The notes: generated from the sequence alone by a model not told the origin. 64,000 nucleotides of DNA from Ascidiella aspersa (GCA_963924565.1 OZ004615.1:7750001-7814000); one strand, 5' to 3'; positions 14,001-62,773 are shown, counted from the stretch's first letter. A program made the numbers and translations.

Positions 14001-17000
14001 CGACAGGATGGAGCCACGGCGAAAGTCGGCAGACGATGAGACGTCGTCACTGTGTTTGAATGTAAGCAATTTTGAAAAAAATATTGCAAAATACACACCA
14101 GGAGATTCTTGTTTGGGTTGTGCTGTTATTCAGAATTAAAAATAACGGATTTAAATTAATTGTTTTAAGATGTCGTAAAAACTAATATTTAAAAACAAAT
14201 AAACAGGTTGACAGACTGTTTCATATATTTTCTATACCTTTTTCGGCAAGAAGAATATGCGTTAATTAGCACACCTTTCGGACAATGTTAACAGGTAGGC
14301 TACAAAAAAAAACTTGTGCCTAAAACTTACTTAGGCTATTCTAAGAGAAAAATAATAAAGATAATAATCGGTAAAGTTATTGTTTTCCGTTTTCGAGAAA
14401 GAGGCAGTTCGTCCACCATATGGCCATTTTTGCTCATGTGAAAAACACTGTTTGTGCTACACCTGACAAAGATACAAAATGGTGATAGACACAGGTTTTT
14501 CACTGGTTGGCTTTTTGTTTTCGTTGCTTTTCGTTAACCTCCCGAATATAAGACTAAAAAAAAACTATTCAAAGAGCTACTGTACATTTAAAATGCGAAA
14601 AAGTAAATTTTTAAGAGATTTTAAAACTAGATCAACTTTTACTATTGAGCTTCAGGGTGCCACATTTAATAAGACCTGTTCTCGTGCGAAGTTATTTCAT
14701 TTTTTTGTTTGTGGAATTTTCTATTCTTACAGGAATCGTTTAGAATAGGCTACTTTCCTAACTTCCATGTTGGATATAATTTTACCTAATGGTGCAAGCA
14801 ATTATAGGATTAAACACAAAATCCAAACTAGTTAAGAGTAAAATATTAGGCCTACTCTTGATCAGGAGTCGCTGGTCTAGGCGCTGAGTCTGCAACTTCG
14901 CTAGCTGTTGGCGATAAAACTTCCAGTGATTCCTGAGCAACCTTTAATAAAAATAGAAACATTAGTAAGTTTTGTAGTCTTGGGAGAATCCTGGGTTTAA
15001 ACATTAATGAGAATTTTGTTGTTTAACTTTGCAAAGTGGGCACATTTACATATAATTAAAAGCCAATGCGATAACGTACAAATTTTACTTTTACTCAGGT
15101 GCTTATGATTTTTCTGCGTGATGTAGTTTTTGGCTAGTGTAATTTGTGAGTAAAAATATCGAATTGCATTTTTTTCCGATATTGTACAATCCTTCATAAG
15201 ATTTTTTAAGTTTATTTGGTATAAACTTGATTTTATTTGTTTCAATAAATGTAACTTGTTCTCGATGTTAAATAAAATATTGAACTGATAATATCAGATT
15301 TAAAATTAATTTTGAAAGTACGACTTTAAAATCGTGAAAATAATGATTCAGTTATATTTAATTTTACTAACCTGGACATATTCGCCATCTTGGTTTAGCG
15401 AATCCTTGACGTTGCTCAAGTCACTTTTAGGTTCAAGTGGCTGAGGCAGGTTGGCTAAATAGAATTAAATTGTTAGTTGGTAAAAGGCTAAACTAGTTTC
15501 ATTATATTATGGATTGATGGTATGGGGCCTTCTACAGAATTTAGGCTTAAAATGTGCGTCATGTAACTTTTGATTTTGTCAATCACTTTTAAAATCTGAT
15601 GCTTAGATAAACAACACTGAGGCTTATTTACCTTTTGAGTGGTTCAATGTTAGAAATCAACACGAGGCAACACAACCCACGATAATATTCTACAGTGAGT
15701 TTGTAGGAGTAGCAATGCTTTTTTACAATATTTTCACTAAATTTGTCACTACACACCCGACGCACAGTCTGCTTAGCCACAAGTAAAGCATACCATCTCA
15801 GAGTAAACCAAAACTACGTTTAGTTAAAATCACAGTGCTCCAACGCTAGAAAACACCCCTGATGGCTGTAGTTGGCATTATACATGATTCGACAACAAGG
15901 AATTTTTGGTTTGTTTTTGAGGCAAATTCGAAACGCATTGCGAGAAGCGCACTTGCGATTTCAATTTCGCCGTCTTTTTTAATCTATTTCAAACCGAACA
16001 AAAGTGTAATAGTTTTAATGTCGCGTACAAAGTTGAGACCAAACTGGAGGCGAGACGAAATAGAGGCGATAATGTCCATGCGCAAAATAAATCAACGATA
16101 AACTTCAAAATAATTAGAAAAAACACAAAAAATAAGAAACTTTGAATACACAACGGAGTTGTACAAGATTCAAAATCAAAGTTAAAAAGGACATTCAGTT
16201 AATTTGACTTGCACAACTTTGCGGCAAGAGTATAAACGTATTTTACAGGGAAGCGTTTATCATGGAGCGGACATACATCTTGTCAAAACACCAACCACAA
16301 CATCAAACGCTTCGCATTCGTCACAGAACAAACACATTGAAAGCACCACTTGAGATATACTTGACACTATATAATACCGCATGAGCGGGGTACCTCTATA
16401 AAATGAGGAGTCGTCATAGATGAATCAACGAGAAAAATGTACAAAAACCTAAAAAAAAATCGACAAAGTAAAGGTGAAACTATACGAGGATGGGCAATAG
16501 GCGTAAAGTTGTTTATGGAGGCAATGCAACATAACAAATTGGGCAACGAAAATTGAGCAACGAGGCTTTAGGTTTACGCAAAATAGTCCCGTTATAACTT
16601 GTAAAATGCTACTTAACACCTTCAGTTGCAAAATGCAATTACTGCATTTCACAGTTAATTGTTAGCAAAGCCGCGATTTAAACGTGACGCAATAGCATAA
16701 AGCATTCAAATAATAGGCAAACAAAAGTTATATTACAGTGCTAAAATCTTTTAATTTCCTTCATTTACAATCTTTGGACTTGATCACGGTGTGCATCCGA
16801 TCGCAAAACTTGGAATTCTTGCTTTGCCAATCCACCACCAATCTGGGTTAATTTATGTGGTGAGTTTCTTCAAACCCCCTGTCAACCCAGAGACCGATGA
16901 CGATGTTTGGGGGGCTGGATTGCTGTGGCAAGCTCCTTTACGCAAACCCATCTGAAGTTTGGTTATGGCACGAACCGCGTTGATGGAACGCTGTAACAAT

Positions 17001-20000
17001 ATAAGTAACAAGACATATTCATTATCGAAATCGATTAGCTTTACGTGTGTACAAGTGCTTAGAACTGTACATTTAATAAACTTAATTATTGGTCTGCATT
17101 AAACACCCTGTATGTGAGATAGTAAGTGGGTAGCTGTTAGATGCGTAGGTTTACTACAGGTCACACACACGCTGTGGTGAACTGAAGTATATTACAGGGT
17201 AAATCGGTTAGGTACAACCCGGAGATGGTGAACCTTTTATTGTATGAGTCACAAACGAGACCTTTATCCTTTTATAAAAGACACAAGTGGGTCGTACATT
17301 ATCCAGTGATAATAATATTTCGAAATTCGCCGATTTCACCTTTCTACAAATAACTTTGTCCTTTGTTGGTAATCCATAAGTTTATTACGACGACTCATTG
17401 CAATTGATAGTAGGCCCACGAATCAGTTACATAAATTAGGCTTCGTACCAATATGAAAAACAAATAAAGTTAACAAACCATATTATGGTAGCAAAATTAA
17501 TTTATCAAGGAGCTCCGCGCTCTAAGAATTGTACTTCCCAGACTGGTTTAAACAGCAGTGCCTAATTGTTAAACATATTTGTTTTTTAAAACATTTTGTA
17601 AACAAACTTTTTAGAGTTACAAGTGGGTTGCAGAACATCTGTAATAGTTTCCTAAGGTTCACGCGGTTTAGTGATTCGTCATCCGTTTTATGGGCTAAAT
17701 GGGTCAAGTCAGGCCGGCCCTATTGTTAACATTAACTATAAATGTGCCGTAAAAAAGTATGAATCGCAAAATGTACTTCGATTCAACACTCCAGTTTTTA
17801 TTTCTTAGCAATGGTATATGCTTGAGTATTATATGTCCCCACGTCTAAGCAAAATAGTTTATTTGAGTGGGCATCCGAACTGCAGCAAATTGTCAGGGGA
17901 ATCAGATAACGGCTGTTACGCGTCTAATTATAATAATCGCAGTGCCGAAATGTATAGTGGCTAGCGGTCTGGCAAGAGTCCTTACAGTATGTAATGATTG
18001 TAATGTCTTAACTTGGCAGAAGAACATAGGTGGGTATTCAATCGGTGACCGACAAGCAAATCGCAAAAATACCAAACAAACCTAAATATATCACAACACC
18101 ATTTTACTGATCGAATTTGTAAACAAAAACAACTTAAAAAGAATAACACAGTATCTAAATGGACGGCTATAAAAAAAAATATTTTCCACTCGAGTGTTCC
18201 AGCTAAAACGAGACAAAACCAGACTTCATCACTCACCACCCATTTTCTCCGGGCCACGAACTTCTTAAGGTTAAGCACAGCCGCGCATAAGCTCTTGCGA
18301 TGCGAAGCGCCGTCCATGGCTGCTTTCTGAAGCCAATCGTGCTTCAAGCAATCTGCACAACTCGGTCTGATCCTGCGAAAAAGCAGTACGGTTAATCTCA
18401 GACAAAGCACATAAAACGAGTCGCAAAAGTAGAGGTTTGTTGGAACTTGAAAACATTTCGACGTTTTGCTTTGTCTTATAGCTCATATAAACGCTCGGTT
18501 TGCCACGAAAAAATTTATGAACTAAATTGACATTCTGAACCGATTCGCATCGGCAAGACTCTAAGCCTTACTTAATTTTTAAGCGAGCGTAAAACCCGTT
18601 TTAATTTAAGATCCGTTGAGTTAGCATTTCTTTCTCTTCTAATTGGAATTTATAAGTTATCGCACGTTTTAAAGAACGAATTCGTTTTGTCTTTCGTTGA
18701 ACTTCAAACACCAGTTTCATTATTAAATGTTGAAAGACCCTGTCTCAAGTTTAAAGTTAAATTATTCTAAAACTGTAATAAGTAACCAGCACGCTACCGG
18801 TACACAGCTGTTCGGGGTAGTTTTATTTGAGTGTAAACCAACATATATAGATTAAATATATTAAGATCCGTCGGGTAATCTGGTAAGAAACGATAGCGAA
18901 TGGGGGAACACATATGATTATAGGATGTGACAACATTTCTTTCATGAAGTTAAACTTAAACGACTAAGAGGGCTTGAACATGTAATGCGAAGGGACACTT
19001 GTCGTTTCCCGAAAATCACACTAAGATTGACTCCAATTGGTAAAAAAAACCTAAAGCGATATAGCAATGTATCCGACCTGACCATTACGGGTCCATGAAG
19101 AACATCGCAACATGCTGCTTAAGACCATGAACAAATGGGAAGTCTGGTTTGTAGCTTATGCCGCAATCGGGGTCAAACGTAATTTATTGACTAAAAAAAT
19201 ACACACTTTAGAAGGTCTGTTAGTTTCTATTAGGACTAACATACACAAATAAACGTGTCGCAGGAAATATCAATATCTAATTTCAGGGCGTTACTGGTAC
19301 GTAAATTTACTTCTGGCATACCTTATGTTTATCAATAAGATTGCCTCTATTTATCTGAAAACTTAAGCAGGAGAATCGCAATTGGATAAGACTTTTTACC
19401 TTTCATTGTGTTTGAGCAGCGTGGTGATAAAGTTCTTGGCCTCTTCGCTGATTTCGTCGAAACTTTCGTCATCGAAATCGACTTCTCCGCTTGTGACGTT
19501 CGACAGGGTTTCTTGTTCAGTGTCGCCCATGAAGGGGGAAAGTCCCGATAACCTGAAAACGCAGTTGCTTCGATTTGATTACACGGCTTCATCGATTCCA
19601 ACAAAATCACAATTTTTTAGGACTATACGCAAGCTTTTCGAAGAAATGGGAATGAAAGTTATTTTAAAACATGTCGATTTAGGCGACTCAAGTTTCAAGA
19701 AAGAGTTCAAGAAGTTAAGGACAGGTATTATAGCGGCTTGTTCTTTGGAGTCAGAAACCTACAAGGAACGTATAAAAGACTTAAGCAGCCATCGACTCTC
19801 GCCTTTAAAGCCAGCACCTACTTAGCCATACTATACAATTACTTAATCGCTAAATTAACTAGTATTAAAATTGCAAGTCCGTATCGCGTTGGTTACTAGG
19901 TTGACTTTACTTTATTTTTCACCTTTACGTTGTTGTGCGTGAACCAGCGTTTTCTCGGATGTTACGAGGACGAAACCAAACAGGCAACCGAAAACACTCA

Positions 20001-23000
20001 AAGGCACGTGTGATATATCGATTGAACATACAAATCGGAGGTGGATTTTACATATCTATATGTCAAACACAATACGAAATGTGAAATATTTTCAAAATTG
20101 GAGGAATTCGGCGAAAGTGATATGAATGACCGTTTTACATGTATTGACGCCACCAGCTGTCAACAATTAAAAAAAAATAATTTGATTTAAAAAAATGCTA
20201 GGACAGTGCTGCATTCTGATATGTTTATTTTAAAATAGTAACAGTTTTATGGTTTGGGATACGTTATCCTTATGGTAATCTGGGTTGGCTTATTTAAGTT
20301 CGACAATCTTAGTTTACTCGCAACATCTGAACCTATTGCGATTATCAAGACCTTTGCGGTAAACCACAATTGCTGAGTTAGCATTTCTTTAACTTTTCGA
20401 AACAGTAATTTATAAGACAATCTTAATTTGCTCACAACTCATGTTCGAATGTCTTTTTAACAAAAAATTTAAAGATCTTCCATTAATATTGCGATTCTTG
20501 GGTGGCGTATTGATAGTCCAACAATCTTCATATCCTTGCGTCTATTGTAAATGATTTGTTGTTTTCTTAAAACGAGTAACAAATATGCAAAGCGTTACCT
20601 CCGCAAACAACGAGGTAAAATCGCAAATTAAATAGTTAAATGTACAACTTACAGCACGTAGGTTATGACGCCGATGCTCCACACGTCCGTGCCCTTTCCC
20701 AAGGGGTCAAAGTTGACGACCTCGGGCGCCACAAACTCTGGAGTGCCGAACATTATTTTCAGCGGCTTGTTGGGAACGTAGCGACGCGCGAAGCCGAAGT
20801 CGATTATCTTGATCAGGTCGAGTCGAGTCGGACTCACGCAGAGAATGTTCTCAGGCTGGAACGAGTACATTTGTCGAGTTGAAAAATCGCGATGTAATGT
20901 TAGGACGAATATGTTAAAATCGTTTGGCTAGTTTAAAAACGATTATCTTTTGTTTTTAATTTTTTTTAACATTGAACGAATTTTTTTTAATTATGTTAAA
21001 TATATGGTTGCTACTGCGTATATGAAAACCTGTTAATATCATTTTTGTGAATGTGAATCGAACTATTGTGCAAAAGGAATTTTGCACTGCCCGGGAATCG
21101 AACCCGGGGCGCAAGAATGGGAATCTTGCATGTTACCACTAGACCAGCAGTGCCGATGGTTCAATAAGGAACCGGTGAGATTTTAACTAACAGTAATGAT
21201 TATGTCTGCGATAGTTCGAATAAATGGACTCAAGTGTAAGTTATATGCTTTTTTTTATTTCACCACGTCCTTTTTGGCTATTGACTTTATAACAACCAAT
21301 TACAAAAAAAAAACAGTAAGAACAAGATGTTTCTAAACTTCCTAATTATTTTTTTTGATAGTCAACATGGCTTTAAGATTGGTATTGCACAATTACTCGC
21401 ACACTATACTTGGTTAAACAGTACAGCATAATTTTACAGAATGTCATAAACAATTGACTTTAGAGAAGCCACTTTCTATAAATACTAGTGTATATTTATT
21501 TACAATGTGACGAGCTGTACATTGTGAGTAACTATAACAGACCATTGTGTTTTTTAACATAACGAGCACTCTTGTGATAAGCCAACATTGCGAATCACTA
21601 TAATGATGATTTCGTCGAAACCTATTATTTATTACCAGAATCATAAGAATTTCAACGTAACTTGTAATTTAGATAATTACTGCTTAATTTCTGAAACAAC
21701 CTATTACACAACTTTGGCGATGTAAACGTATTATACCAACGGTATAAATTATTTAGAAAACTATTAATAATTCTAGCTGTTTAATGTTGAGAAGGAGATT
21801 ATGTGGTTCTTTATTCTGAAACGTATTTAGATCCGAAACTTAACCTCATATCGCTTGTTTATAATTTAGTTGCCACTTCGTATAGTGAACAATATTAACA
21901 CGACGTTATGGAATACCATGTGATTAATGTTTATTATTCTATTGCGGTTAGCTTACACGATACAGTATATATAGCTGAACATGAGTTCCAATATATTTTA
22001 GTATAGATTGGTTATATTTTAAGAATATTACCCGCTCGTGTGTATTGATTTCATTCTACAGTTTGTAGATTGTTATTACAGTTTGTTCATTATTACATTG
22101 GATCTCATGTAATTTTTTTAAAAGGAAACTATTTTTTTTAGATATCGTTGTGACTACGTAAAATTTGTATATAGCTTAATGTTGATTGGTGTGATGAATA
22201 GGGATATTGGACAATATCGGATAGGAGCCGATATATCGATGTCAAGTGGTAGTGTCGGCACTCGTCCGATACTTGGGTGGTATCGGTGGCGATCCGATAA
22301 CAAATTAAAAAGGAAGTTTAGGCCAGATTTTCGATCTGGTGCAACAATTTCTACTTTCGACGTTAAATTTATTAAACAATGTTTAACAAATGTAGATAAT
22401 TAAACTTTTGATCACTGAAGTATAAATGTGACGGGCAAATACGTTGGGACCAGTGCTCTGTAAGGTTTTACTATAGTCTTGAATATGACAATTGAACTTA
22501 AATTGTGTGTTAACAAACTGTATTAAGTTTTTAGCAGTTGCCATCGGTAAAATACGAAGGAATGATTGACCTAATGAAATATACTAGCTATAATCTATTT
22601 GTTAGTGCAAAACTGCTGATATTTTGCGAAACTGCTGAACTAATTCAAACGTGAGAAAATCATATGCATATACCTTTAGATCAAGATGGAGTATGTTGAC
22701 ACTGTGCATGTAGCTGATGGCCTCGCATATCTGACCGATGTACTTCACTGCCAGTTGTTCGGTCAAATCGAAGGTTTCGTCGCAAACGCGATCGAACAAT
22801 TCGCCACCCGTTACACTGCACAAAGTGTCGTTGTTTAGAAAACGTTTAAAGGTAGAACTTCACAATATATAATAGTACGCATCTGACTTTAATAGTTACG
22901 TAGGGGGCAGGGAAAAGTACAAAAACAAACGACTTTCTTTTAAATCGCCGGGCTTCCGATAAAAAGTCCTATATATATGAAATATTATGTTAAGTTGCCG

Positions 23001-26000
23001 TTCCACACAATTTTTCAGCCTACTATTAGTTTGTCTGTAATTGCTCAAATAGCAATTTAAAATTCGATGGCAATAATAAAACAACCGCGCAAAACATCCA
23101 AGAAATTAATGCAATCTTTGAAGCATCAAGACCAATGACTGACAGTGCTATTAAAATGAACAGCATTATACCGTGATAATATTATCTTTAAACTAATAAA
23201 CAAGAAAACAGTAGATGTTCTTTGTGAAAACGGAAGACAATTGCTGAAAATTCGTGAAAGGATATGTAAACATAACAATTTTAGTTACTGTTATAAAGCT
23301 ATTGCAAGGTTTGATGCCAGGTGATGATTGGCATTACGGACCCTGGAGGTCTTAGTCGTTTAGTGAAACGAGGCCGATTATGGAAAAGCCAATAAAATGC
23401 GCAATCTTTGAAGTTTGCTTTCGTCAGGTGCGTATTACTCCCATGAATGGAATTCCCAATAAATTGAAACAACAAAGCGCTTATCGCGCTGGCATAATCT
23501 CCCTTTAGACGACATTTCAGCAAGGGAGTCGGCAACCATTATAAGGTCGCAAACGTCGCGGCGAAATAAACAACAGTTAACTATAAAGGTAGGTCGGTTG
23601 GTCGTGTGTCATTTTGCGGTCGAAGCAACATTGATATTTAACGCGCTATAGGGCTGTTTCGTTTTAAAAGACACTTTCTGTTTCGCTTCTTAAGCCACTT
23701 CAAAATGATTAGACGAAGCAGACCGTGAAACGTCTCCAATATTGACTCAGTGCTGTTGTCTTCTTAAAAGTTCTAACAATTGAATTGAAATTGTTTTGCT
23801 ACAATTTTGTTAAACCCATTTAAATAAATGTGCCGATTGGAATTACGTTGTTTAGTGATACTGCAATGTAGTCCTTGATTGTGTTTCCTTTTTTTTAGCG
23901 TAGATTAAATAGTAACCAAAAATTATATCAAAAAATAAAGCATCACCCGACTATAGATCGGAAATTATTCCTTTCTTCATAATCTGTTGCATTTTTCACA
24001 ACGAAAATGTATGCAGATATTGCGGATTTTGTTTGCGTTTAACTAGTAAGTCTAAGCTTTGAACACATATTTAAAAGATAAACAATATTAGTGAAATCCT
24101 TGGGGGGTGGTTGTAGTTTGTTGTAAAACCGGTTACCGGGCATTTTCGCCAAAAAAAAAACGGCGAAAACACGCGCGAAATAATCACCCGACTATAGATC
24201 GGAACCGAACCGAGCAACTCACAGTTCCAGAATGAAGGTGACGTCGTTCTTGCCGTAAAGAACGTCGTACAGCTGCAGCAGCTTGGGGTGGGCGAGGTCG
24301 TTCATGAGCTCGATCTCGAGATCGAACTCCTTCCTCTGGCTGGGACGGCGACAGGCGCACTGCTTGGCCGCGAACTTGCCACCCCCTTGCTTCTCGAGCA
24401 CCAGCGAAACCTTGCCGAAACGGCCACTGGAATGCACCAAGGGAAAGGAGTTTACGTTTTGTTTTCGCGTTTGCGAAGTCTTTGCACCCTCGGTCCTTTT
24501 TCTCGCAGGTGTTTTGCAGCGCTTCTCCTGATTTAACGGCCTGTGCTTTACACCAATACTAACACCTACGCCACACCAATAGAACTGCTAGCAATTTAAA
24601 TCGGCGACTCCAAGGCACGGGTCTACCTTTTGAACTTGCATGAGTTCATTAAGCTACCACACCACCAGTTTAGTAGTAGTTATTTGATGTAATATTGGTT
24701 CAATTCTGCTCCTAACTGTAGTCGGTGTATACCACTGACAGAAAAAAAGAAAAAATGGCATTGTAATTGCCAGATGCCACTGTACTTCACGGTAATGTCA
24801 TTTATTGAGTGGTCTTTCGTTAATAAAAGTAATTGTTAGCGAAATATAATATTTTTGACGCCATGATTTGAACTACCCCTCTGAACTATTGCAAGGAATG
24901 CGTATCGTTTAGTGAGGGAATAGAACGTCAGAATATTTTCAATTGAAATCGAATGTTTCACATTGTTAAATGCTTTAACGGTTGTCAGCAAATATTTTTT
25001 TATAAAATAGCTTCATGTTTTTGAGGTTTCGAAGAAAAAGGGAAAGCAGCTGATATATTGTTACGTTAAAGCTGTCGTGTTCGATGAAAACATTCGTTTG
25101 GAATAGAAATGTAAAACAATTATTTTAGATGTGGTGTGTATCTGAGCAAACACATTGATGAAAGAGTGCAATCGTTGCGGCGTGATTAGAACCTTGTGGT
25201 CTTATGACTCTTTATTAGTATGGTAACCAATCGAAAAACTGATTTTGACCTATGTTAAACCGCAAATATAAACTAGTACGTAGCAATCGCATCAAATCCC
25301 TACTTCCTCTGTCAATCTAATTCTAACGTCACTAATGAAGTTGCAGTTTATTTTTGTCTAGCGACACAGGCCATTGTTTTACAATATGAGTACATTGTCC
25401 CTTTGGCCCATATATAGTTGCTCTACAGCGGTCGTTAAAGTCAAATTTGTTACGCGTAATTGAATGCATTCGTATTTGAGAGGTTTGCGCAAGTTGGGTA
25501 ATGTGGCGTAATAAGAATTAAGACTTTTTTTTTACGTGAAAACCCATTACACAGCAGCTTACTGTTTTTTTCACTTACGCAGGTTGAAAAAACCCAAACA
25601 AATTGGAACATTGCCACTGTGATGCACTTATATATAAAGCAGGATATCCCAGGCTGTTCAGTCTGCGACCCTTTTTAAGTTTTTTCAAGTTCTTCGCGAC
25701 CGTTTTGGTTGAATCGTGTTGATCAAGCAAAATATTGCCTTTCTAAATTTATGTAGCCTTACTAGCGACCCCTGAAAGTTATTGCATCTGCAGGGTCGCT
25801 TTTGTTGGGAGGATGGCGGGCTACTATAAAAGACTATTGTTTGATGTACGCAAAATAAATGAAGGCACCAAAAAAAAACTGATTACCTGCCAAGCACATC
25901 CTTGACTTGATAGAGGTCGGCCAGAGCTTTGTCGGTCTTCGCCTTGACGACTTTGTGCTGAAAGTATGCCGGATCTCCCAAGTTCTCTGGGACACCAAGA

Positions 26001-29000
26001 ATCACCATTGTGAGTTCGTGTTTGTTGGCGCACGACAAACAGCAAAGCAATAACAGTGGGTGGGAGAACGTTATGGCTATGCGAGATTACGAACGTGGGT
26101 CGCTATTGACATACAATAAATTTTATGGACGATATGTTGCCAACCAGCAAAGGCAAAACTTGTTTAAACAAATTTGGAAAAATACAAAGTAGGATTATTT
26201 ATTAATTGACATAGTTCGGACTGCAATGATATACTGCAACTTTTTTAAGTTTGTTAATGAAGTACCTATAGGAAGAACTGCCTTACAAAGCTTTTCCTGT
26301 TAAACTTAGGCTACGTTAAGTCCTTGACCTGGCTAGGACCTGAATACACTGACGAAGGTACAGTCTGCCTATGTTAAAATACTGCCCCTTCTTACCGAAT
26401 CGAGACGGTATTTCTGAAGGGCGTCTGTTTACTTTCGTCTTACACCTTTGTTTTGGCCCACACGTTTGTCTAATCAATCACGGCTGCGATGCATTATTAA
26501 CAAGAAAAATTCACTGAGCTCCTTAAGTCTCTGCCTCTAATAAGATTTTAGCGCTACCGCCTGTAAGTAATATATCAGTGTAAAAATATTAAACTTGGCT
26601 GGCGTCTTATTTTCAAAGCTAACATTTTAGTATCGAGTAAAGGTATGATTTATATAATAAAAAAACGCCTTTAGCTTTACTAGAAGGACACACTCAGAAA
26701 ATGAAAAACTTTCGAGCATAAAAAGTGTTGAAAGTTTTTTTGATTCGTAACACACAACTTAGCATTCTGTATTGAGGTTGTTAGGAAAGCGGCCTTCAGT
26801 AAAACAAAACGTGATTTTAAAATCTAAACGTTGTTCAAATGACCAAATGTGTGTCTTCCAGTCTAACCCAATGCGCAATTTTCTCTTAACCTTTGACCGT
26901 TGTTTCCGTTGCGATCAATTAGCTAGTTTCGTTGCGAGCTTTCAAACAGCAAGGCAAAGACCAGGAAGCCAAAGGCAGCGGTTAGTGCACTTATGGCATT
27001 GGTATCTTCATTAGAGACCTATAGTTGATTTCGGCAGCGCCGTTATCTTGTCCGTGAAATATTATAAAACAAATCAGCTAAAAAAAGAAAATACCGCACA
27101 TCTGGCCATTTAAAGGTGGCCATGAACACTTCTTAATTTTTAAATGTTTGCAAACTAGATCTTAACAAATTATTGTTTTTTTGGGCAAAATGTTACTAAA
27201 TGCAAACATCTCTCGAATATGCTTTATATCGATATACATGTGTTTATACCCACGTCTCGAAACCGGCCGCTTACAAACTGTCGAACATTTTAAAAGATAA
27301 ACAAAATGTTTAACATAAGTTAAATGAACCGACTTGGCGACAAACACCTTGCATTACCACCAGTGAAAATACTGCCTCAATCCTCTCTTAACATAATTAT
27401 ACCATACAACAAACAAACAAACAGCATCATGAGCGACGGAGCGCATTCGTTGCAGCGAGTAGAGCTGACGATTCCAGTCAACAGCAGGCTAACTGCATTC
27501 CCGACCCGAGCGACAACCGCCCCATAACGACATACAACCGCGTATTGGCGCTCACCCGAACCAATACCCTTGTTGTATTCCAAAGAAGGCTGACAACTGC
27601 AGTGGGAGAAATATACACATTAGCGTCGCTGCCGTACAGTCAGTTGTGCACGAAATAAATGTTTACAAGCCTGCCACTGTCGCTCCTATCTTTTTAGTCG
27701 TGTTTTCGGTGGCTCGTCGTGCCAATTCGCATTGGACCGGATAGCGCGTGATGGTATGAAAATGAAAATTGCCATTACTCTTTGGATTTTGATGCGATCA
27801 CCGCTTAAATCATTATCTTAGCTTTCAAAAATAGTACGAGATATTTTATTTTGAACAACAAAATGCAGAATCGTCTCCAGTATGTGTTGCGATATCTTTT
27901 TGCGAAATTGATGCAGATTTTAAAATGACAAGGTGAACAAGGCGTAACAACTAAGCGACGAAGTGGGGGGAATCCCGTAATCCATGCCAATGGACGCTAA
28001 ATTTTCCGTCGGATTTAAGGCCATTGATGTAAAATAAGATTAAACAAACTGGCCGTGGATAAAAGTGCCCAGAGGAGCTTGGTCAAGTAAGACGTCTCAT
28101 GAAGGAAATATTTGTCACAAAAATACACATTTTATCCCACATTGGCGAAGTTGGAATTTTTTGCAAATGGCTGTTAAATCGAAAATACACGCTTTCTCAG
28201 ATGCAGAAGGACAACAAAAAACAAACTTTGGTCTTCCAGAGTTAGTCAGCAAACAGGCCGACACGCTTTGTGTCAACAAGCGATAATGTTAACAACCTTT
28301 CGAGAATTTCCAAACGTGCGGCAGATATGGGAGCCGTGTACAAAGTTTAAATGTGTTGCCTAGCATGACATGCCTGCTACACTATAACTACGATTGAACT
28401 CGCAGTGCTCATGCTTGTCGCGTATGTTAAACAAATATCAGAGATGTTCAACTAAATAAAAAGATCGATATTTGTTGATAGCGGGCTTGAATTTAGCTAC
28501 CGCTGGCAACTTTAGTTTTCCCGTAAAAACCGTAAGACTAAAATTGTTGCATTTCCGCCATAGAAGTATGATACATTTCTCTAAAAACTTGATGTGATTA
28601 ACTATCTACTGATTTTGTCCTGCGACGTTCAAGGAGAACGACTACGCCAATATTACGTATCAGCAAAATTAAAATAAGCTAAATTTAGGAAACCTATTTA
28701 TTTATTTATTTTTTATCACTTTACGTCCAAAACGTATCGTCATTGCGCCTGTATTGCATTAGCAGATGACAACATGCCTTAAATAACGGATGAACTCCGT
28801 TGCGTCATAACGTTCTGATTCAATTACCTAATTAAATTTAACCAAGAGAAAGAGGCTAGCTCAACGCTATATCGTTCTGACTCATAGCATATTAACTGAC
28901 AATCTATACTTTTTACCAAGTCTGCATTTCTTCTGAACCTAAAAATGAACAATCCCCTGCAAAAATTCAAGACGAATGCTAAAGGTAAAGGCAGATGTCA

Positions 29001-32000
29001 CGCTTTCGTCTGCGGCCAGCAGCGTCAACCATTTTCCTTCCATTGTGGGTCTCGGGCCAGGTCAGATGTGGGGCGTAACTTGGCAAATAAACGCAGGGCA
29101 ACGCGATCACACGGACTGGGCGCCCATTGCCCACTTGAGGAACGCGACACTGTGAAGATAAGGGCGACGAAAGGTTGCCGGCGATGTCCAGCATTGAACA
29201 AACAGAAGTACGGGTGATATATTACGGTTCCGATAACGAGCTTGTATAGAGCCACCGTGGACATCGTCCCATCAATGGTAATCCCAAGCCAAAAATGTAG
29301 TTAGGCAGAAGACTGTAAGTGGGGACAGGATGGGTAGGTAAAATTAAACCAAGACCTACATTCTTTTCATGGATATTTTGATTTGTCAGAAAATTCCTTA
29401 ATCTTTGGTTCAGAAATTCCTTAATCGAGTCTGTTCTTTATCCAAGGGCTTCATGTCGCCTCCTACGCATTTCTCGCTTTCTATAGCAAGAAAATATTAT
29501 TGAAACGGCTATTCTACCCAAATCGTACGATTTTGGCCTCCTATTCCACTTTGCAAAAAATGCGCTTTAAAATTGTGAGTACTTTGTAATAAGAGTGGGT
29601 CAACAGCCTGTGTCAACACAACCAACAAGTTGTTGTTCGCGTTCATAAGTTATAAGCATGGGTTTGGCAACTCGTTATTACAGTCTCGGTGATGAGTGAT
29701 GCCGAGGATTAGAATACAATACATAAGGGGACATATGCCGCGCGTCATCTATTTAATCCTTAAAAACGTCGTAAAGACAGTGAAATTTAGGTTTTCTTTT
29801 GCAGTAAACATGAATTTTGGGTATGAATGTTTAGCGTTAATTGTGGCCAGGTTTAAGTAAAGTAGTTTCAACTTATCACAAACACTGTATGGTGGACGTC
29901 TTATTATTCGCGCTAAAATGAAGTTAAACTGTTTCTGTCGAGGAATAGAATAGGACTGTCAACATCTCTGTGGGATCTGTAATTTGACATTTTTGATTAT
30001 TTTCCATTAGCACTCCGCTTTGATTAAAAACATAATGTACGATTAAACGCAGTCAAAAGAAAAATAAACGCCAGCCAGGGCAATCACCTATTTTAGTGAC
30101 AGATACGGCAAAACCAAATTAAAAAGTTTTGAAGCGGTTTCAAAATTTGTTGCCATTTGAGCATAATTGACAAGCGCACAAAGGAGGCGACGACAGAAGT
30201 GAAATCAAAACTATCGTATTTTGCGTGTTGTGGACACGGACCAGTTATGGCGTTCGTTTAACGTTTTAAAAAACGTGTCATTCAACAGGCAGGTCTTAAC
30301 CACGGCTATTGACGAATTGTATCGTATTACCGGACCTGGGTTAGCCACTGTTGTGTTACCTTTCAAGGTTTCGGACAGGAAATTACTCTTGAATTCCACG
30401 CTAAATATTCGACGGCAAAATTTTGCCGCATGTTATTTTTCTGCCAAATGCCGTATTTTGACTAACAATAACTTCACAAGGTACCCTTAATTAGGTAGTT
30501 GGGTACACTATGCACGGATCTGTAATGTAGCTTGATAATAAATTGCAAAGCCAAAAAGGTCGAGTAGATCGACAGCATCTTGATTAAGACGTTTCGATAC
30601 GAGCTTGTATTAACTATTGCGTCCCATCTCTTATAAGTGATGCTTAATGTGCTTCTCAGTCACATCAACTGAAGATGATACGAGCTCGTATCGAAACGTC
30701 TTAATCAAGATGCTGTCGATCTACTCGACCTTTTTGACTTTGCAATTTATTATCAAGCAACTCTTAATTAGTTTTCGAAAAAATGTGTTGTTTTTTGGAC
30801 GAGAGTAATTTGACTTGAAAATACTTTGCACATATTTAAGCTTGACAAATTTGCTGCAAGCATAACAACAATAGAAGCCCAAGAACTTTTAACAGCATAA
30901 TCAAATTAGTCCGAATTACCATTTGCGCATGACATTTTGCGGTGTTGGAAATAAATATCGCTAAGTTGACAAGAAGTGGGTTGTTGGCGATTCGAATGCA
31001 ACTTCTTACGCTTTTAAAAAAACAAAGTATCTCGCGATCATGTTACAAAACAAAAATGCCGCCAATTGGTAAACAGGACGGTCGCTTTGTGCAGCGAAGC
31101 GTAAAGGACGCGCCAAGTTCAAATACTAAGTTGTCACAAGGTGAGGCTAAACAGCTCGTTGAATTTAGCTCCAAAATGTTAATGTGTGATGTGGTTCTGT
31201 GGTATGTAAGCGAAACCTTTCAAGAGCAAAAGTAACTCACGCGTTTAAACCTCGCGCCCGATGCGCAAGCCACACAAGGGATCGTACTGTTGAAAGGAGA
31301 AACAATTTTAAATGCGCTTTTATTACTTGCAAAAATATGACGTTTTGCATAAAATCAGCAACATTTTGAAAAGTTTTTACAAAATTTGGCGCTCGTAGTA
31401 AATTCCCCCCAAAAACAACATGTCGACGATAAAATTATTGGTATATGACCATGCGTTTTATTGAATAACTAAAATACCTTTTAAAACAATCAAAAAAAAA
31501 ACAAAAACATTTTGATAAAACGTATAACTTTCCTTACAAAATACGCTTCTCGTGTTTTTGCTGAAAAACTGCTAATGGTAATGATACTTTTGCACGTCGG
31601 CAAACACTTTGTTATTGTTTTACCACAACGCCAACGCCACTGTGGCCTCCAATAAATCACCTTTTCTCTTCCTACTTTTCTCAGCTGAAATACGACCACG
31701 CGTATATGGAGACCGGTGTATATATGAACTGTTATTTATGCTTTCTTAAATACTGCATTTTATTAACTGATCCTTTGGTATGCTGGTATGGATGGTAAAC
31801 AGTTTTGATATGTGGTCTGCCTAACTGAGATAGTTGCAAACTTGTTTTCCTATATAAACTTAAATTTAATAGACAAATTCCTGTGACTTAACATATTAAA
31901 ACAGTTAAACGTATTTAGATTTTAAGCAACAATCAAGCTGATTGTGGGCTACAAACTAACATAGGCCTACCAGCATTCACAAAAATAACTATAAACAACA

Positions 32001-35000
32001 CTTAACTTACCGGTTTCCGTCATTTTAAAATATCCTCAATCCAAGACTGGGCGACTTGTTTAGATGACTCCGTTGGCGACACTCCGTCAAATGTAGAACT
32101 TTATTGTTTGTTTGGACAGCAAAAGTACGCAGTAGAAATAGATCTAACGATATGACTCTAGAAGTTTGTAAACATCTTAAAGGGTGTGGTAAAAACGCGC
32201 AAAATGTCTCTGTTACAGGTTTGATGCAGCACAAAAATTTCTATTTGCCTCCGGTACCGCAAACTTTAGGCTGTATATGCGACGAAACATGTATTTATGT
32301 ATAAATTTTTGCCGATAAAATTGTTCAACAGCAACATAGCTAATACTTCCGAGTGCATATCTATAAGCTTAGTCTTTAAGTCCTACCCCAATCAACAATT
32401 GCTAAATAGGGTTTACGTAAGTGAGCGACTGTTGTATATCGTCACAGAAATACTTACGTTTTCATTAACCTTATTTTTCTCAGAATCACAGCGACATTTG
32501 ATATAAAGATGTTACGCGCCCTTTTAACCCTTTTGACTGTAGCAGACCATACACAAAACGCCTCTTTACCGGACGTTAAACTAAAGGTCATGTAAGACGT
32601 TTGCCAGTTTTATCCTGCTTAAAATTCGTGACATTTACAGTTGGCCAAATTTAGTGTTGTAAACTCTATTACTCAGGAACTTAACAGGTAAAAGTGTAAT
32701 GCCTTAAGCTTAGCTGTTATTCACTCATATTAAACTGAAATTGTCTCCAAATATTGAATGCTACTGATGAAACCTGAGTTCTCATGTATATCTTAACTAA
32801 ACACTTTACGTACTAGTTTTAATGTAAAGCAGCAAACTCCCTACTAATAACAAGGGTAATACTTGTACACTGATGAATATACAGGCATGTGCACCCGAGC
32901 ACACCTGATCGCTTTGAGGTTACGAGTTAAGCTATGCTCAGTTAGCTGCACTTGCGCACCGACCCGTTGCGTTTAGCCTCCGAGTAACATTGGCGTGAAC
33001 TCCATAATGTTGCTCACAACGTCTGAGCTAAACTTCTTCGCCATCAAAACCCTTAGCTGTGCGTAGTTTTTCGGGCGATCTGAAACTCAGGCGTCCGCAC
33101 CGATGTTAATATGTGTTACGCGAGCTAAGGACCTGAGAGCGAGAGGCGTCGTGTAATCCATTGCAGGTGATTAGCACACTGACCCTGGATATGGGCCCTG
33201 GGAAAGTCGCTAAAGTGCTTATCACCCGAACGGCGGACGACAATTACCGGGCAAAACACGAGCTCGTGTGATGCGGCATCGCTATTGTCCACCGCCTTGC
33301 AAACTGACTCAACTTTTTCACATCGTGACGCCGCCTACGCAACTATCTGGTCGAATTTTAATTAAACAAAACGCACTTAAGTTCAGGCCGCTTTATATCG
33401 ACCACTGCTGACAAGTTTTATAGCTAAACAATGTTCAGTTAGCTGCAGCCTCGTTTTACAACAACCGGCTAGCAAAATTTGCGCCTTTCTCGAAGAAATC
33501 CGGTTTAATCACAACAGATTAAACCGCCACCCGAGCGTAGCCTGCTTCGATTGTGCGACTGTAACTAAACATTGCTTGAAAGCGCCTAAGCCGTCTTGGT
33601 CAGTTGTTTAGCATCGTTCACCGGTCATTCAATTACGCGGCTCTTAACGAAACATTAGGCACTGCGCCTTCTTCATATAAGCCTTGAATGCAACGCTATC
33701 GCGACGCAGTGACCGTCTCGCTTATTTGTTGGGCCTGCAGGACGTTCTCGTAGTCATATGGGCGGTATGACCTCATATACACAGCGATGTTGATGCCTGT
33801 GCTTGGTTCGTCATGGGTTAACTCGACACAAAGCGCGTCCAAGCCAAGTCCCACAAGGCTCAACGATAGATTCGCTCAGTTGGTCGGAGAACAATCGAAT
33901 ACGAATAAGTCGCCGACCTTAAACCACAGTCCGTGTTCGGATCTGCTTGCATTCGGCAAGATATCGGACAAAAATCACTAACAGAACGAAGTTGTTTGAT
34001 TTGTCATTTTGGTACTATGTTATTTTAAACCATATCCTATTACACAACTTTGATGTGGCCTCACAGAACCTTACAATGAGATGTTACATCGCTGTGCATT
34101 TTGCATACTAAATCTTTGTTATTCATAACTAGTAAGACTTCCACAGATAGATGTCACGCAAGTACACATTTTTACTTTTTAGTGTAACAAAATCTGTATA
34201 ACTAAAAAATTAAATCAATCACGGGATTAGTTTTACGAAATGTGTCTTTTTGCAAATCGTGACTGTTAAGAATTCTGCCTCATAAAGGAAATACAAAACA
34301 AGCTAAGTCTGTTGCATTGTTTGACAATGTTTCGCTATGATACACAGTACTCAGTACCCGATTAAAAATACAGGCTTACAATGAATACAGGCGGTTTCAA
34401 AAGTAGAACTGACATAGGAAGTATCGAAGCGGCCAGTCGTTGAACTTAGCTAATTGAGACGTGGGTCTTTCAGTCGCCTACATACTATAGTAGGCCGCAA
34501 AAACTCTTTGTACTTTAATAATAGATACATCATGACTGATAGAAGACCGGAAGCGATACTGTGAACGGCACAGGCGATGACGGCCTATGTCTTGATGATA
34601 ATCTATATAAATTGTAAACATTAGATGTAGTTATGCGAAGTAGTCGCCTTGTCTTTCGGCTCTCAGTGTTCAGGCTTTGTGGTCAATGAAGCTTCACGCA
34701 CACACCTAATATCGAAAATGATTTAAGGTTTATGTGGAATGTGGTAGCGTAGCAATTTTATGTTATAGGTTTTTTGTGACACGGTACAAATTGAACATCA
34801 TGATATGTTACAAAATGCACATGAAAAATACAGTATATATATTTACTTCAACTCCCTGACCTAAAGTGAGCAACCTATTGTACACAATAACCTTGTTTAG
34901 TACAGGGAATCAGTTGCGAGAGATTACTATTGGAATTTCAAATACGATACATAATAATTTCATATACTACTGATAACGTTTTGGACGCCACATATGGAAT

Positions 35001-38000
35001 GTAAAAAAAAATATATGTTAAATATGTTTCCAGTACACTGTTGCAAGCGCAGCGACATCTAACGTATGGTTATGTCATTGCCTGCCTTTTTTCTAGCAAA
35101 GTTATCAAGCTACTTTCCAAAACTACACTGACTAATGCTTGTAGCAAAGCCCACACAAAAACCCTTACTGTGTTCGCCGTCGCTTTCACCCGCTTCACAA
35201 ATGGTCGACTGTGACGATGGCTTTTCATGTTCGACGTAGGATAGACCGGCACCCGTATCGGTCGGATTGTGATCTTTGTCGGTCGGAAAACTGAAGTTAT
35301 TTTCGCCTTGCTGATGACGGGGTTGCGCGGGTGAGCTACCACGCGAATCTACAAAAGGCAAAAATGTTTGGCAACCAGCAGGGACATGCCCAGGGCCGGA
35401 TTAAGGGTACAGTCGGCCTGAGGCTGTTGACTAACTTTGCAAACCAAGCTACAAAAAGTAATAAAAACATATACATAAAAATTGAAATTATTTACTGCAA
35501 AATAACATGAACATAACTCAAAAGCATGTATTAATGCAAATAACCTTACAAGAGTTTAACCTTAAATTGAGGGCTCGAATTTTTCCAGGGCCTAAGGCTA
35601 TAATCTTAGTAGCCTAATGTTTAGTCCGGCACTGGACATGTCCTATATACGTGAAACTTATAAGCATTCTCTCAACCCATACCGAAGCCAAAATTGTGGC
35701 TATTATGCTATTTTATAGAAAAGGATATATCACGCCGAATTGAAACAAAAACCGTACTTAATTAGGCATGGTTTGCATTTGCCAAAGTATGGATTATAGT
35801 ATTTTGTTTGTTATTTCTACAGCAATATTTTACTACAAAATCACATTTATTTTATTGTTAACCATATTCAACATTACATGATATCTTTGATTTCTGTTCT
35901 GCATCTCTTTTGGCCACCAACGACGTTTTATTTATGAATAGCCTGACGTTATTATGAATGTCAAACCCCGTTTCGTAATGAGATCCGTTATAAGGTAATC
36001 CCGGCACGTAGCAAGTAAAGTCCACAACAATAGAGTCGCACCCACCTCGCAAAAATGTGCGCTTACTGAAAAACCCCTATACGCTTTTACAAATATTTCT
36101 TATAAAATCTGGAAGCACCGCATGGAACTGTGTTTAAACTGAAAACGTACATGGTCAGTGATCAATTTTGGGCAAGTTAATCAACAATACACTCTAAATA
36201 GTTTTAAACTTGACGTTATCCGTACAATTTGCGTAAAATCAAACATTCGCCCGTGTGCGCATTTAATTAAACTACAATACATCTCCAAACACCTTATTAT
36301 TTTCAACCGTTATTTTGGATGTACTGAGTACTTACTCGTTTTCGCTTCCCGTGGTAAAAAAGAGTGCTGCGAGTCGCTAAACTCGAGCAGAGTGCGAATC
36401 AACTCGTTCATGGCGCGCGAGTCCTGGCGGATCAGACACAGCGATTTCTTGTCTGCAATGTTTTAAAACCTGAGTATTTTGTTATGTTTTTTACGAGTAA
36501 TTTAATATGTTAAGTGAACTGAATCTTGCGACAAAATTTTAAGAGAAATGTTAACAAAGTGTGTTTCCGACTTATGATTTTCGACATTTTTTTAGGTTTC
36601 TTGACACCGACTTAAGATAGTCCATTTGTGTCAAAAAATTACCAAAACAAATTAAGTTATACAAAGAAATATATTTACTAACTATTTGGGAACAACGTTT
36701 CTGCCGGATTTTTGTAAAATCATATCTGTATAAGGGTCAAGATTAAATTAGGTATAAAAACTAAACCGAGTGTCTTGTGATAAAATACATAGCAAATGTC
36801 TAAGTTTGTTATTTTGTTTTAAAAAAAACTCGATATCTTTCGTGTCTATATTGACTCAGATGACAGAGACAAAGATGTCAAGTTTAGCCGCGGTTTTATT
36901 TTTCTGATTTAATAAATAAAAAAATTCGAGCAAGTTTTCCATAGGGTTTTTGCAAAACCAGGGCACAAACCTGCGCGTTGCAAAATCGTCTGTTGGCAGA
37001 TCCGCTTCAACGTCAAAAGCCCAGCACTCCCGACTTCATTTTCCACCATCTTGCTTACGTCATCGGCGGAAAGCGTTTCGCGACCGTCTTCGCTCTCCAA
37101 ATTCGGCTGCTCGCGAACCAAGACCGGGCTTTCGAGATCTTCGCAAATCCGACTGAATCCGCTCAACGCCTCTTCGGGGCATTCTGGTGTTTCCGTGAAA
37201 TTTTGCGGTTGCTCGCAAAGCGGCGCGTTTGGCTGGGCGGACGAGTTTGGGTATTTTGATTCGGAAACATTGCCCTGGCTGTTGATGCGAGTTGAGCTCT
37301 CGTCCTCGTTGGCCGATTCCCGTAGCGGAGGTTGGAGAGACAGAAGCTTGCTGAAATAAGAAGGGCTGTATTATAATATTGTATTGCTTCTTATGTTTTA
37401 TCCAACCGTGTTTGGGATATGTTATGACTGGGGCCCGCAAAAGTCAATAAAGTTAAAATTTTTTAAGGACCTCGTCTGTCCACGAATCAAAGAATAAAGT
37501 AGTTTTCAGCATCTAAGGGACTGTTTCTAAGAAGTTTATAGGTCAAAATGAAGTTAAAATTTACAAAAAAGTTAAAAATTTTTAATAAAGACAAAATTTG
37601 TCAAATTATGGCTTTGACAAAGTTTTTGTGTTTCTTGAGAGTAATTTCTGTAAAAATCGTCGTGGAAGCATTGTAAATCAGGAACTGCGACTCAATTAAC
37701 CATATTAACCCATAAAAGCAGGAAATATGTCACAATGCCCACTTGAATCAGCAGTAACTTTTATCGCAAATGTTCCGAGTCCGACTCCGGTCAAATGTAC
37801 GATTTCGTCTAGTCCCGAGTCCGGCCCTGACTCTACAGTCTGTATTGCGTCGATTTACGTAACTAAAAAATAACGACGATAATCAGCAATCCACTTATAG
37901 GGGTGTCGTATAGTTCACTCACAATACATGGTTGGAAATATTCCATTATATGCTATTCAATTTCTAGCGGCCATATCAGTTTTAAAATTTGGTACTGCGC

Positions 38001-58755: not shown

Positions 58756-59900
58756 CTGAAATAAAATCAATTTAAAACATATTAGAACATTTTTAGAACA
58801 CGCCACTGAATAACAAATATTGTGTGAATTTGTTAAAAAAAGCCACAGTTCCTCTGAACAAATAGATAAGGCTTCAGTCACCTAATCCGCGGATTGCGGT
58901 TCCGAGTCACATTTCGGCTAATGCAAAAAAAAGATGAAATTTATTTTGTGGTGATTTGCTAGACTTTAATGAAATTGGAAGATTTGTTACAACAAATCAC
59001 CTCTTGAAGCCTATGAATGAGGCGTCAGTCTGCTAAACCAAATATTGCGGGTTCTAATCACGGTTGGGAAATGTTTTCAAAAAGCAAAAAAAAAAGAATT
59101 GCGGTGTTTTGCTAGAAATATTACAAATTCACTCCAAAAGAAACTCCTGTGGCCTAATGGATAAATCGTCGGTTTCCTAAACCGAAGATTGCGGGTTCGA
59201 GTCCCGCCAGGGGTATAATTTTAGAATAAGTAAAATACGTTTGTTGTGTTATGGTTGAATTATTCCAAATTGGAAGATTTGTTAAAAGAAACCAGCTCCT
59301 TTGGCCTAGTGGATAAGGCGTCAGTCTCCTAAACCGAAGATTGCGGGTTCGAGTCCCGCCAGGGGTATAATTTTAGAATAAGTAAAGTACTTTTGTTGTT
59401 TTATGGTTGAATTATTCCAATTTGGAAGATTTGTTAGAAGAAACCAGCTCCTGTGGCCTAATAGATAAGGCGTCGGTCTCCTAAACCGAAGATTGCGGGT
59501 TCGAGTCCCGCCATGGGTATAATTTTAGAATAAGTAAAATACTTTTGTTGTGTTATGGTTGAATTATTCCAAATTGGAAGATTTGTTAGAAGAAGCCAGC
59601 TCCTGTGGCCTAATGGATAACGGTCGGTCTCCTAAACCGAAGATTGCGGGTTCGATTCCCGCCAGGGGTAAATTTTTAAGAGAAGAAAACAACTGTGTGG
59701 TATTTGTCTAGAATTATTTTAAATTGGAAAATTTGTCAGAACTTAAGATCTCCTGTGGCCTAATGGATAAGGCGTCGGTCTCCTAAATCGAAGATTGCGG
59801 GTTCGAATGTCGCCAGGGGTATGATTTTAGAATAAGTAAAATACTTTTGTTGTGTTATGGTTGAATTATTCCAAATTGGAAGATTTGTTAAATGAAACCA

Positions 59901-59973
59901 GCTCCTGTGGCCTAATGGATAAGGCGTCGGTCTCCTAAACCGAAGATTGCGGGTTCGAGTCCCGCCAGGGGTA
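59901..59973 (+). tRNA. tRNA-Arg(CCT), consensus copy
   Basis: GCTCCTGTGGCCTAATGGATAAGGCGTCGGTCTCCTAAACCGAAGATTGCGGGTTCGAGTCCCGCCAGGGGTA; anticodon arm TCGGT-CTCCTAA-ACCGA; T run downstream. Confidence 0.93.
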
Positions 59974-60505
59974 TAATTTTAGAATAAGTAAAATACTTTT
60001 GTTGTGTTATGGTTGAATTATTCCAAATTGGAAGATTTGTTAGAAGAAACCAGTTTCTGTGGCCCAATGGATAAGGCGTCGGTCTCCTAATCCGAAGATT
60101 GTGGGTTCGATTCCCGCCAGGAGTAAATTTTTAAGTGAAGAAAACAACTTTGTGGTGTTTTGCTGCAATTATTTTAAATTGGAAGATTTGTCAGAACATA
60201 AGAGATCCTGTGGCCTAATGGATAAGTTGTCGGTCTCCTAAATCGAAGATTGCGGGTTCGAATTGCGCCGAGGGTAAATTTTTAAGTGGGTAAAATAACT
60301 TTGTGGTGTTTTTCTACTATCATTTTTAATTGGAATATTTGTTAGAAGAAACCAGCTCCTGTTGCCTAATAGATAAGGCGTCGGTCTCCTAAACCGAAGA
60401 TTTCGCGTTCGAGTCCCGCCAGGGGTAAAATTTTAAGTGAGTAAAATAACTTGGTGGTGTTTTGCTACAATTATTTTAAATTGAAAGATTTGTTAGAACA
60501 TAAGA

Positions 60506-60578
60506 GCTCCTGTGGCCTAATGGATAAGGCGTCGGTCTCCTAAACCGAAGATTGCGGGTTCGAGTCCCGCCAGGGGTA
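60506..60578 (+). tRNA. tRNA-Arg(CCT), consensus copy
   Basis: Identical to the array consensus, T5 downstream. Confidence 0.93.
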
Positions 60579-60656
60579 AATTTTTAAGTGAGTAAAATAA
60601 CTTTGTGGTGTTTTGCTACAATTATTTTAAATTGAAAGATTTGTTAGAACATAAGA

Positions 60657-60729
60657 GCTCCTGTGGCCTAATGGATAAGGCGTCGGTCTCCTAAACCGAA
60701 GATTGCGGGATCGAGTCCCGCCAGGGGTA
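60657..60729 (+). tRNA. tRNA-Arg(CCT) variant (T54>A in the T loop/B box)
   Basis: One substitution from consensus (GGGATCGA). Confidence 0.65.
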
Positions 60730-62053: not shown

Positions 62054-62068
62054 TGTTATAACATAAGA

Positions 62069-62694: not shown

Positions 62695-62773
62695 TAATTT
62701 TATAATAAGTAAAATACTTTTATTGTGTCATGGTTGAATTATTCCAAATTGGAAGAGTTGTTAGAAGAAACCA

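Follow-up and report, generated by a model that had tools for sequence, protein, structure and literature searches.

We analysed a 64,000-nucleotide stretch of the genome of the ascidian Ascidiella aspersa (C9:7750001-7814000, referred to as a whole as the window) that carries a kinase of the MLCK (myosin light chain kinase) family between exons resembling those of obscurin, and we conclude with moderate confidence that it is best explained as a multi-output, same-strand locus of the titin/obscurin/MLCK family. The genes of interest and all coordinates that were checked lie on the minus strand, along which a scaffold with DH-PH-Ig-Ig architecture is followed by Ser/Glu-rich linker exons, then by the MLCK (kinase A), and finally by a block of three Ig domains and a pseudokinase (kinase B). 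The two exons bordering the MLCK are 35348-35169 (acceptor tttgtag/ATTC, donor ACA/GTAAGG, phase 1 in and phase 1 out) and 15454-15372 (acceptor ctatttag/CC, donor CAG/GTTAGT); the latter is open in one of its three frames, entered in phase 1 and left in phase 0, and this open frame contains no ATG. The interval between them (35168-15455) measures 19,714 bp and contains no runs of N. A first-pass annotation of this DNA had described a phase-1 exon end at 35169, a phase-1 exon start without an in-frame ATG at 15454, and a full, stop-terminated MLCK on the same strand within the 19,714 bp; the sequence and our splice reading agree with it, and the frame count, intact motifs and calmodulin-type tail described below bear out the MLCK. 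Throughout, homology searches were made exon by exon, ascidian orthologues served as proxies for kinase A in the phylogenetic tree, and joined exons were counted for frame and length only.

Kinase A is encoded by seven GT-AG exons spanning 26008-16856 on the minus strand and followed by a TAA codon at 16855-16853, which in the frame check gave 365 codons with a single, terminal stop. The first coding exon (26008-25887) opens with the ATG at 26008, which has A at -3 and G at +4, and contains an internal acceptor at 25986 (AG at 25988-25987), which is phase 1, in frame with the donor at 35169, and equal in score to the acceptors of the confirmed MLCK exons. It is followed by exons at 24426-24223, 22815-22674, 20855-20653, 19552-19400, 18372-18237 (with a phase-0 donor at 18237) and 16990-16856, so that the count of coding MLCK exons is seven and not the eight to ten strong exons proposed before. 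A pattern scan located an ATTAAA at 16750-16755, about 100 nucleotides past the stop, which is a candidate polyadenylation signal.

We regard kinase A, on the basis of its sequence, as a bona fide MLCK of the short, MYLK2/3/4-like type, predicted to be regulated by Ca2+/calmodulin. The catalytic motifs GRFGKV, AAK, HLDLKPEN, DFG and PEFVAPE are intact in the exon translations, and Pfam Pkinase matches three of the exons. When the exon carrying the DFG motif was compared with PDB, the best match was human MYLK4 (E 2.5e-22), with Drosophila obscurin PK1 reaching only 3.8e-11. A library-wide search with the same exon, and a second one started from its best match, retrieved free-standing short MLCKs from Styela clava (353 amino acids), Clavelina (355), Ciona intestinalis (337), C. 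savignyi (341) and Phallusia mammillata (324). The window exons are collinear, exon by exon, with the Styela, Clavelina, Ciona and Phallusia proteins, with a common start region and end; identity to the P. mammillata protein is 79-82% per exon, and both share the C-terminus ...KKLTT, as would suit a phlebobranch relative of Phallusia. In the tail directly after the kinase, ARRKWV followed by RSINAVRAITKL lines up with RRKWQKTGHAVRAIGRL, as read in fish MYLK and in the Ciona long MLCK; this RRKW...AVRAI segment is a predicted calmodulin-binding and autoinhibitory element.

Since kinase A lies after DH-PH-Ig-Ig and before a second kinase, it occupies the position of the first kinase of obscurin (K1/PK1), and the locus might be read as an ordinary two-kinase obscurin/UNC-89 layout. 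We consider this very unlikely and reject it because of the tree and the exon-level BLAST comparisons. Among the 59 kinase domains of the tree, the short MLCKs of ascidians formed a clade with 100% support that fell within the MLCK clade (94% by the Shimodaira-Hasegawa-like approximate likelihood ratio test, SH-aLRT), together with MYLK, MYLK2/3/4 and the protostome MLCKs, a placement obtained with the proxies (Phallusia, 79-82% identical), whereas the obscurin/SPEG kinases K1 and K2 of vertebrates and protostomes fell outside a branch with 96% SH-aLRT support. The summed per-exon identity of kinase A was 49-54% to the MYLK family as against 37-45% to K1. A conserved stop ends the open reading frame after the calmodulin site, and kinase A has its introns at other positions than kinase B. 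A recent tandem duplication giving rise to kinases A and B was also ruled out, because their intron positions differ and they are only about 44% identical.

One form of the MLCK, to judge from its relatives, is most likely a free protein of about 365 amino acids starting at ATG 26008. This output is supported because all five ascidian orthologues are free-standing, measure 324-355 amino acids and end at the same place; they begin 38-46 residues before the Gly loop, and ATG 26008 lies at the matching position. The free short MLCK of the first-pass annotation is thus upheld, but not the internal promoter that it placed near 32023, as the start corresponds to ATG 26008. The two small 5' exons proposed there, 32023-32011 and 31286-31240, are present as splice-motif strings, but neither gave a homology match, and they were dropped given that the orthologue starts correspond to ATG 26008. 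For the same reasons, of the two acceptors suggested as entry points into the MLCK from upstream, the strong phase-1 site at 25986 is retained and the one at 31286 is not.

Several observations suggest that the MLCK is probably also wired to exons lying upstream of it. Between the scaffold and the MLCK there is a chain of Ser/Glu-rich linker exons on the minus strand, namely E0 (45342-45212), E1 (at about 43782-43646), E2 (43016-42876, phase 1 to 1), E3 (ending at 42242, phase 1 to 2), E4 (40655-40497, phase 2 to 2), E5 (37350-36971, phase 2 to 1) and E6 (35348-35169, phase 1 to 1), and the phases are consistent from E2 through E6 and onward into the acceptor at 25986. The tunicate sequence P0164, an open reading frame of 543 amino acids that belongs to the tunicate short-MLCK clade, has an N-terminal extension of 209 amino acids, and it must derive from a spliced transcript because the whole frame sits on a contig of 2065 bp. 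Residues 65-94 of P0164 are homologous to E2, with a Smith-Waterman score of 74, as compared with 45 for the best other segment on either strand; in 100 shuffles the median was 43, the 95th percentile 49 and the maximum 65. E0 and E4 match the extension more weakly and in the same order, and the similarity extends to what follows the acceptor at 25986 in the first MLCK exon. In addition, two amphioxus proteins labelled obscurin-like, P0144 (XP_078621722) and P0279, have the order Ig6-DH-PH-SH3-Ig, acidic linker, MLCK-clade kinase, calmodulin site and stop. The homology of the P0164 extension and these amphioxus models support a joining of upstream exons to the MLCK by splicing, in keeping with the chimeric product suggested in the first-pass annotation. 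The linker exons also share a motif, [DE][FY]RRGS, that resembles a basophilic kinase site and occurs on both sides of the MLCK (at 42930-42915 in E2 and at 14030-14010 in a candidate exon, 14122-13937) as well as in the P0164 extension.

From these features we infer the promoter use, the splice junctions and the 3' end of the MLCK in the following scheme. A free MLCK would be produced from ATG 26008 with its own stop and its own 3' end, and N-terminally extended forms would arise when the linker exons, and possibly the whole scaffold, are spliced from the donor at 35169 to the acceptor at 25986. The MLCK would in this way provide the upstream unit with an alternative C-terminal module ending in a stop, similar to the tail of vertebrate obscurin-A.

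Some results weigh against the extended forms. No giant tunicate protein joining a scaffold to an MLCK was present among the 150 best library matches to the kinase exon, a homologue search with the P0164 extension returned none, so that P0164 stands alone, and P0164 has nothing corresponding to E5 and E6. As for the amphioxus proteins, they are automatic models in which neighbouring genes could have been fused, and the DH-PH nearest to theirs is that of Trio/Kalirin. Vertebrate MYLK2 and MYLK3 have long disordered N-termini, and E0-E6 could likewise be the disordered N-terminus of the MLCK itself, unlinked to the Ig and DH-PH exons.

The scaffold upstream of the linker exons contains a very divergent DH-PH, for which a Pfam RhoGEF scan of the genome found no match near the locus. 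A custom DH-PH profile, however, matched five collinear minus-strand exons, beginning upstream of the window at L008:2656 and ending at window position 58528, with a best E of 8e-6. The last of them, at 58528-58881, carries the end of the PH domain, and the PH exon of the first-pass annotation is hereby confirmed. By Pfam, SOS1_NGEF_PH gave a weak match at L008:2-235, and the other single DH or PH exons were nearly blank. After the PH domain there follow a first Ig of the I-set type on two exons within 56581-58233 (open segments 58233-58096 and 56814-56581; Pfam E 0.004 and 4e-5) and a second Ig within 46248-47525, made up of an exon at 47525-47290 (phase 1 to 0; Pfam I-set E 1e-14) and, according to the splice and phase scan, a probable G-strand exon at 46308-46248 (phase 0 to 1). 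Ig exons lie on both sides of the DH-PH, so the scaffold has the tandem DH-PH within an Ig-rich protein by which obscurin/UNC-89 is recognised. The intron that splits the PH domain, about 25 kb long, holds a tRNA-like array (translated as ...GGTRTRNLRFRRPTPYPLGH...) which extends from 58900-64000 of the window through L006/L007 (C9:7814001-7834000); at about 25 kb, the array is far longer than the approximately 4 kb first noted for the window.

Downstream of the MLCK, the 83-nucleotide exon candidate D1 (15372-15454) is either an exon by which the scaffold is re-entered (phase 1 in, phase 0 out) or the first coding exon of a separate gene, and homology searches gave no support for either reading. 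From the acceptor at 15454, chains run in frame through 13086, or through 14932 and 13144, and then through 11723 into the Ig exon at 11005. An ATG at about 15387 (A at -3, G at +4) lies in another frame of D1, one that joins the strongest downstream acceptor, 13144, and continues by way of 11723 to the same Ig exon. A second acceptor, at 15440, lies 14 nucleotides inside D1, is phase 0 and fits the phase-0 MLCK donor at 18237. Use of the ATG at about 15387 or of the acceptor at 15440 would change what D1 encodes, and by its sequence D1 could be the first exon of an independent downstream gene. The splice and phase reading places two further linker exons between D1 and the Ig domains, D4 (13144/13086-12973) and D5 (11723-11626, phase 0 to 0), the latter joining the exon at 11005 to give a canonical Ig start.

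The block that follows consists of three I-set Ig domains, each on two exons, within 6120-11005 (segments 11005 and 10275, 9321 and 8667, 7105 and 6545, all six of which are matched by Pfam), and of kinase B. Pfam Pkinase matches place kinase B at 461-5107, in open segments 5107-4910, 4318-4133, 1900-1676 and 643-461, with its last exon just outside the window at L003:9999-9829. Kinase B is degenerate: it keeps HLDLKPEN, but its Gly loop is down to one Gly and DFG has become DFT. In PDB, twitchin, titin, DAPK and Drosophila obscurin PK1 match it in preference to MYLK4, and its best summed per-exon BLAST match is kinase 1 of SPEG/obscurin, by a small margin. In the 30 kb downstream of kinase B no kinase, Ig or Fn3 domain was found, and the genome search, a first-look filter giving a lower bound, returned no K2-like kinase; the second C-terminal kinase after Ig-FnIII that is also typical of obscurin/UNC-89 is accordingly missing from what was found. 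The window has three N runs (2610-2791, 5164-5342 and 7857-8035), each of about 180 bp and evenly spaced at about 2.5 kb, all within the block of Ig domains and kinase B; one of them lies directly upstream of the first kinase B exon and may hide the start of the kinase domain. A dispersed repeat of about 450 bp (window positions about 637-1080), with at least 40 copies in the genome at 73-81% identity, adjoins the kinase B exon at 643-461.

Whether the MLCK is nested in an intron depends on the junction from 35169 to 15454. One obscurin gene reaching from the Ig/DH-PH exons as far as kinase B, with this junction spanning a 19.7-kb intron that holds the MLCK and with all three products being made, is a tentative reading. 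The phase-1 donor at 35169 matches the phase-1 acceptor at 15454, the chains from 15454 lead in frame to the Ig exon at 11005, and similar Ser/Glu-rich linkers with the RRGS motif flank the MLCK on both sides. No obscurin/SPEG-K1-like kinase other than kinase B was found in the genome, and there are no unrelated genes in between. The agreement in phase is nevertheless weak evidence, because it would be expected by chance in one case out of three and because rival joins exist, namely from 18237 to 15440 and in the frame of the ATG at about 15387. The 83-nucleotide exon is without homology support, and its ATG of good context in another frame fits an independent start. A transcript of this kind would also have to skip seven strong exons and a 3' end, although vertebrate obscurin-B is formed by skipping a terminal module in a like manner (PMC3916441).

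The same stretch may instead contain three tandem genes on one strand without common exons, a reading that we hold possible and would not call probable: the scaffold, an MLCK with E0-E6 as its N-terminus and a short isoform from ATG 26008, and a SPEG-like gene for three Ig domains and a pseudokinase starting from the exon at 15454. Spliced-leader trans-splicing is common in ascidians, and the third gene might possibly be started by it at that exon. Long disordered N-termini are familiar from vertebrate MYLK2/3, P0164 starts with Met and has no Ig or PH, and all annotated ascidian MLCK orthologues are free-standing. The ATG at about 15387 has an A at -3 and a G at +4, its frame connects with 13144, the strongest acceptor downstream, and the ATTAAA lies 100 nucleotides past the MLCK stop. 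The obscurin family has been split before, OBSL1 and SPEG being adjacent in vertebrates (PMC12198301). Against three separate genes, the open frame of E0 has no upstream ATG and is reached in frame by the chain of Ig exons, no scaffold stop or 3'-end signal was identified before E0, and the amphioxus models unite the scaffold and the MLCK. We keep the alternative-terminus, nested and tandem readings side by side because the phase evidence is weak, D1 resembles a start, and the obscurin family split on an earlier occasion.

That the MLCK was misplaced between obscurin exons during assembly is hardly credible, and no observation speaks for it. There is no N run anywhere in 8036-64000, the composition profile is without abrupt change across the MLCK flanks, and the order of scaffold and then MLCK recurs in the amphioxus models, as does that of linker and then MLCK in P0164.

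Comparison with known loci shows which parts of the favoured, multi-output locus have precedents. In vertebrate obscurin-A, PH-Ig-Ig is followed by a non-modular end module with its own stop, which is left out of obscurin-B so that the kinase exons are reached; the vertebrate OBSCN gene also gives small kinase-only products and tandem and single "MLCK" kinase isoforms (PMC3916441). The first-pass annotation had taken the arrangement to be unprecedented, which does not hold for the skipping of a stop-terminated C-terminal module, already known from obscurin-B as against obscurin-A (PMC3916441). The ascidian locus is like OBSCN in that DH-PH-Ig-Ig is followed by a stop-terminated module and then by Ig-kinase exons, and unlike it in that the module carries an MLCK-clade kinase with a calmodulin site, the OBSCN kinases forming a separate clade, and in that there is one obscurin-type kinase, degenerate, with no Ig-FnIII-K2 found. 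The vertebrate MYLK gene produces non-muscle long MLCK, smooth-muscle short MLCK and telokin from nested promoters. The ascidian locus resembles it in its predicted long scaffold-bearing and short kinase forms, which would be obtained through internal starts, and in the shared RRKW...AVRAI segment, but its scaffold has a DH-PH and its kinase lacks the C-terminal telokin Ig.

Amphioxus P0144/P0279 have the architecture of the proposed chimera, with Ig repeats and a DH-PH, then an Ig and an acidic linker, and at the end an MLCK-clade kinase with its calmodulin site and stop; the amphioxus automatic models differ in having an SH3 after the PH and a DH-PH closest to Trio/Kalirin. Drosophila Stretchin-Mlck and SPEG/APEG-1 are same-strand loci with multiple promoters and 3' ends. 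C. elegans unc-89 is likewise a same-strand locus with several starts and ends (PMC12812942). As is predicted for the ascidian locus, these three make giant Ig-scaffold and kinase products, separate or fused, from one same-strand locus, but in none of them does a kinase of the MLCK clade stand with a RhoGEF scaffold on one side and an obscurin-type kinase on the other. The logic of alternative termini is already known from OBSCN-A/B, MYLK/telokin and Strn-Mlck, and what differs here is an MLCK-clade kinase in the stop-terminated module. In the literature searched we found nothing specific on an interleaving of obscurin and MLCK in ascidians or amphioxus, and limited evidence points to the novelty of an MLCK-clade module between a RhoGEF scaffold and an obscurin-type pseudokinase.

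The neighbourhood contains further members of the same family. A canonical long MYLK orthologue lies on the same, minus strand about 70 kb upstream, at L014:1898-9063 (C9:7895898-7903063); it is a separate unit with a kinase, a calmodulin site and a telokin Ig end, is 71-94% identical to a Ciona-type MLCK of 1807 amino acids, and terminates some 5 kb upstream of the first Ig exons of obscurin-like type (L013). The long MYLK, the RhoGEF scaffold, the short MLCK and the obscurin-type kinase follow one another on a single strand over about 150 kb, and titin is close by. The titin/connectin-like giant gene is on the plus strand at C9:7551316-7614138, convergent with the locus, with open frames of 1301-5899 amino acids, and its kinase (C9:7613294-7614138) lies about 135 kb beyond the low end of the window. 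According to Hanashima et al. (2025), TTN, OBSCN, MYLK and MYLK2/3/4-type genes share a chromosome in chordates, and in amphioxus one MYLK type lies next to the other (PMC12198301). The ascidian neighbourhood, where about 350 kb hold titin, kinase B, the short MLCK and the long MYLK, fits this chromosome-level clustering of the connectin family. In the sections consulted, that work describes linkage along the chromosome and adjacency of the MYLK genes, and no interleaving of MLCK with obscurin-like exons of the kind seen here. That OBSCN and MYLK are unlinked, as had been assumed, fails for invertebrate chordates according to the same work (PMC12198301), and in Ascidiella the long MYLK orthologue is found just upstream on the same strand.

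A broader proposal, of which we are rather doubtful, is that in invertebrate chordates the striated-type MLCK, of the MYLK2/3/4 lineage, is no gene of its own but a module of a same-strand, obscurin/Trio-like RhoGEF locus with three products and that the vertebrate MYLK2/3/4 genes are escapees from it. Such a locus would yield a free Ca2+/calmodulin kinase, a scaffold-anchored MLCK and an obscurin terminated by a pseudokinase, by means of mutually exclusive 3' ends and internal starts. If the stretch holds three tandem genes, it would be a neat but otherwise ordinary example of a family whose clustering is conserved. Should the junctions prove real, a chordate could have an active Ca2+/calmodulin kinase tethered to an obscurin-like scaffold of the M-band and sarcoplasmic reticulum, and the choice of 3' end would switch between an MLCK and a pseudokinase terminus, which would offer a simple genetic system for the function of obscurin kinases. 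The locus would then also bear on the origin of the MYLK2/3/4, MYLK, OBSCN/SPEG and TTN kinases.

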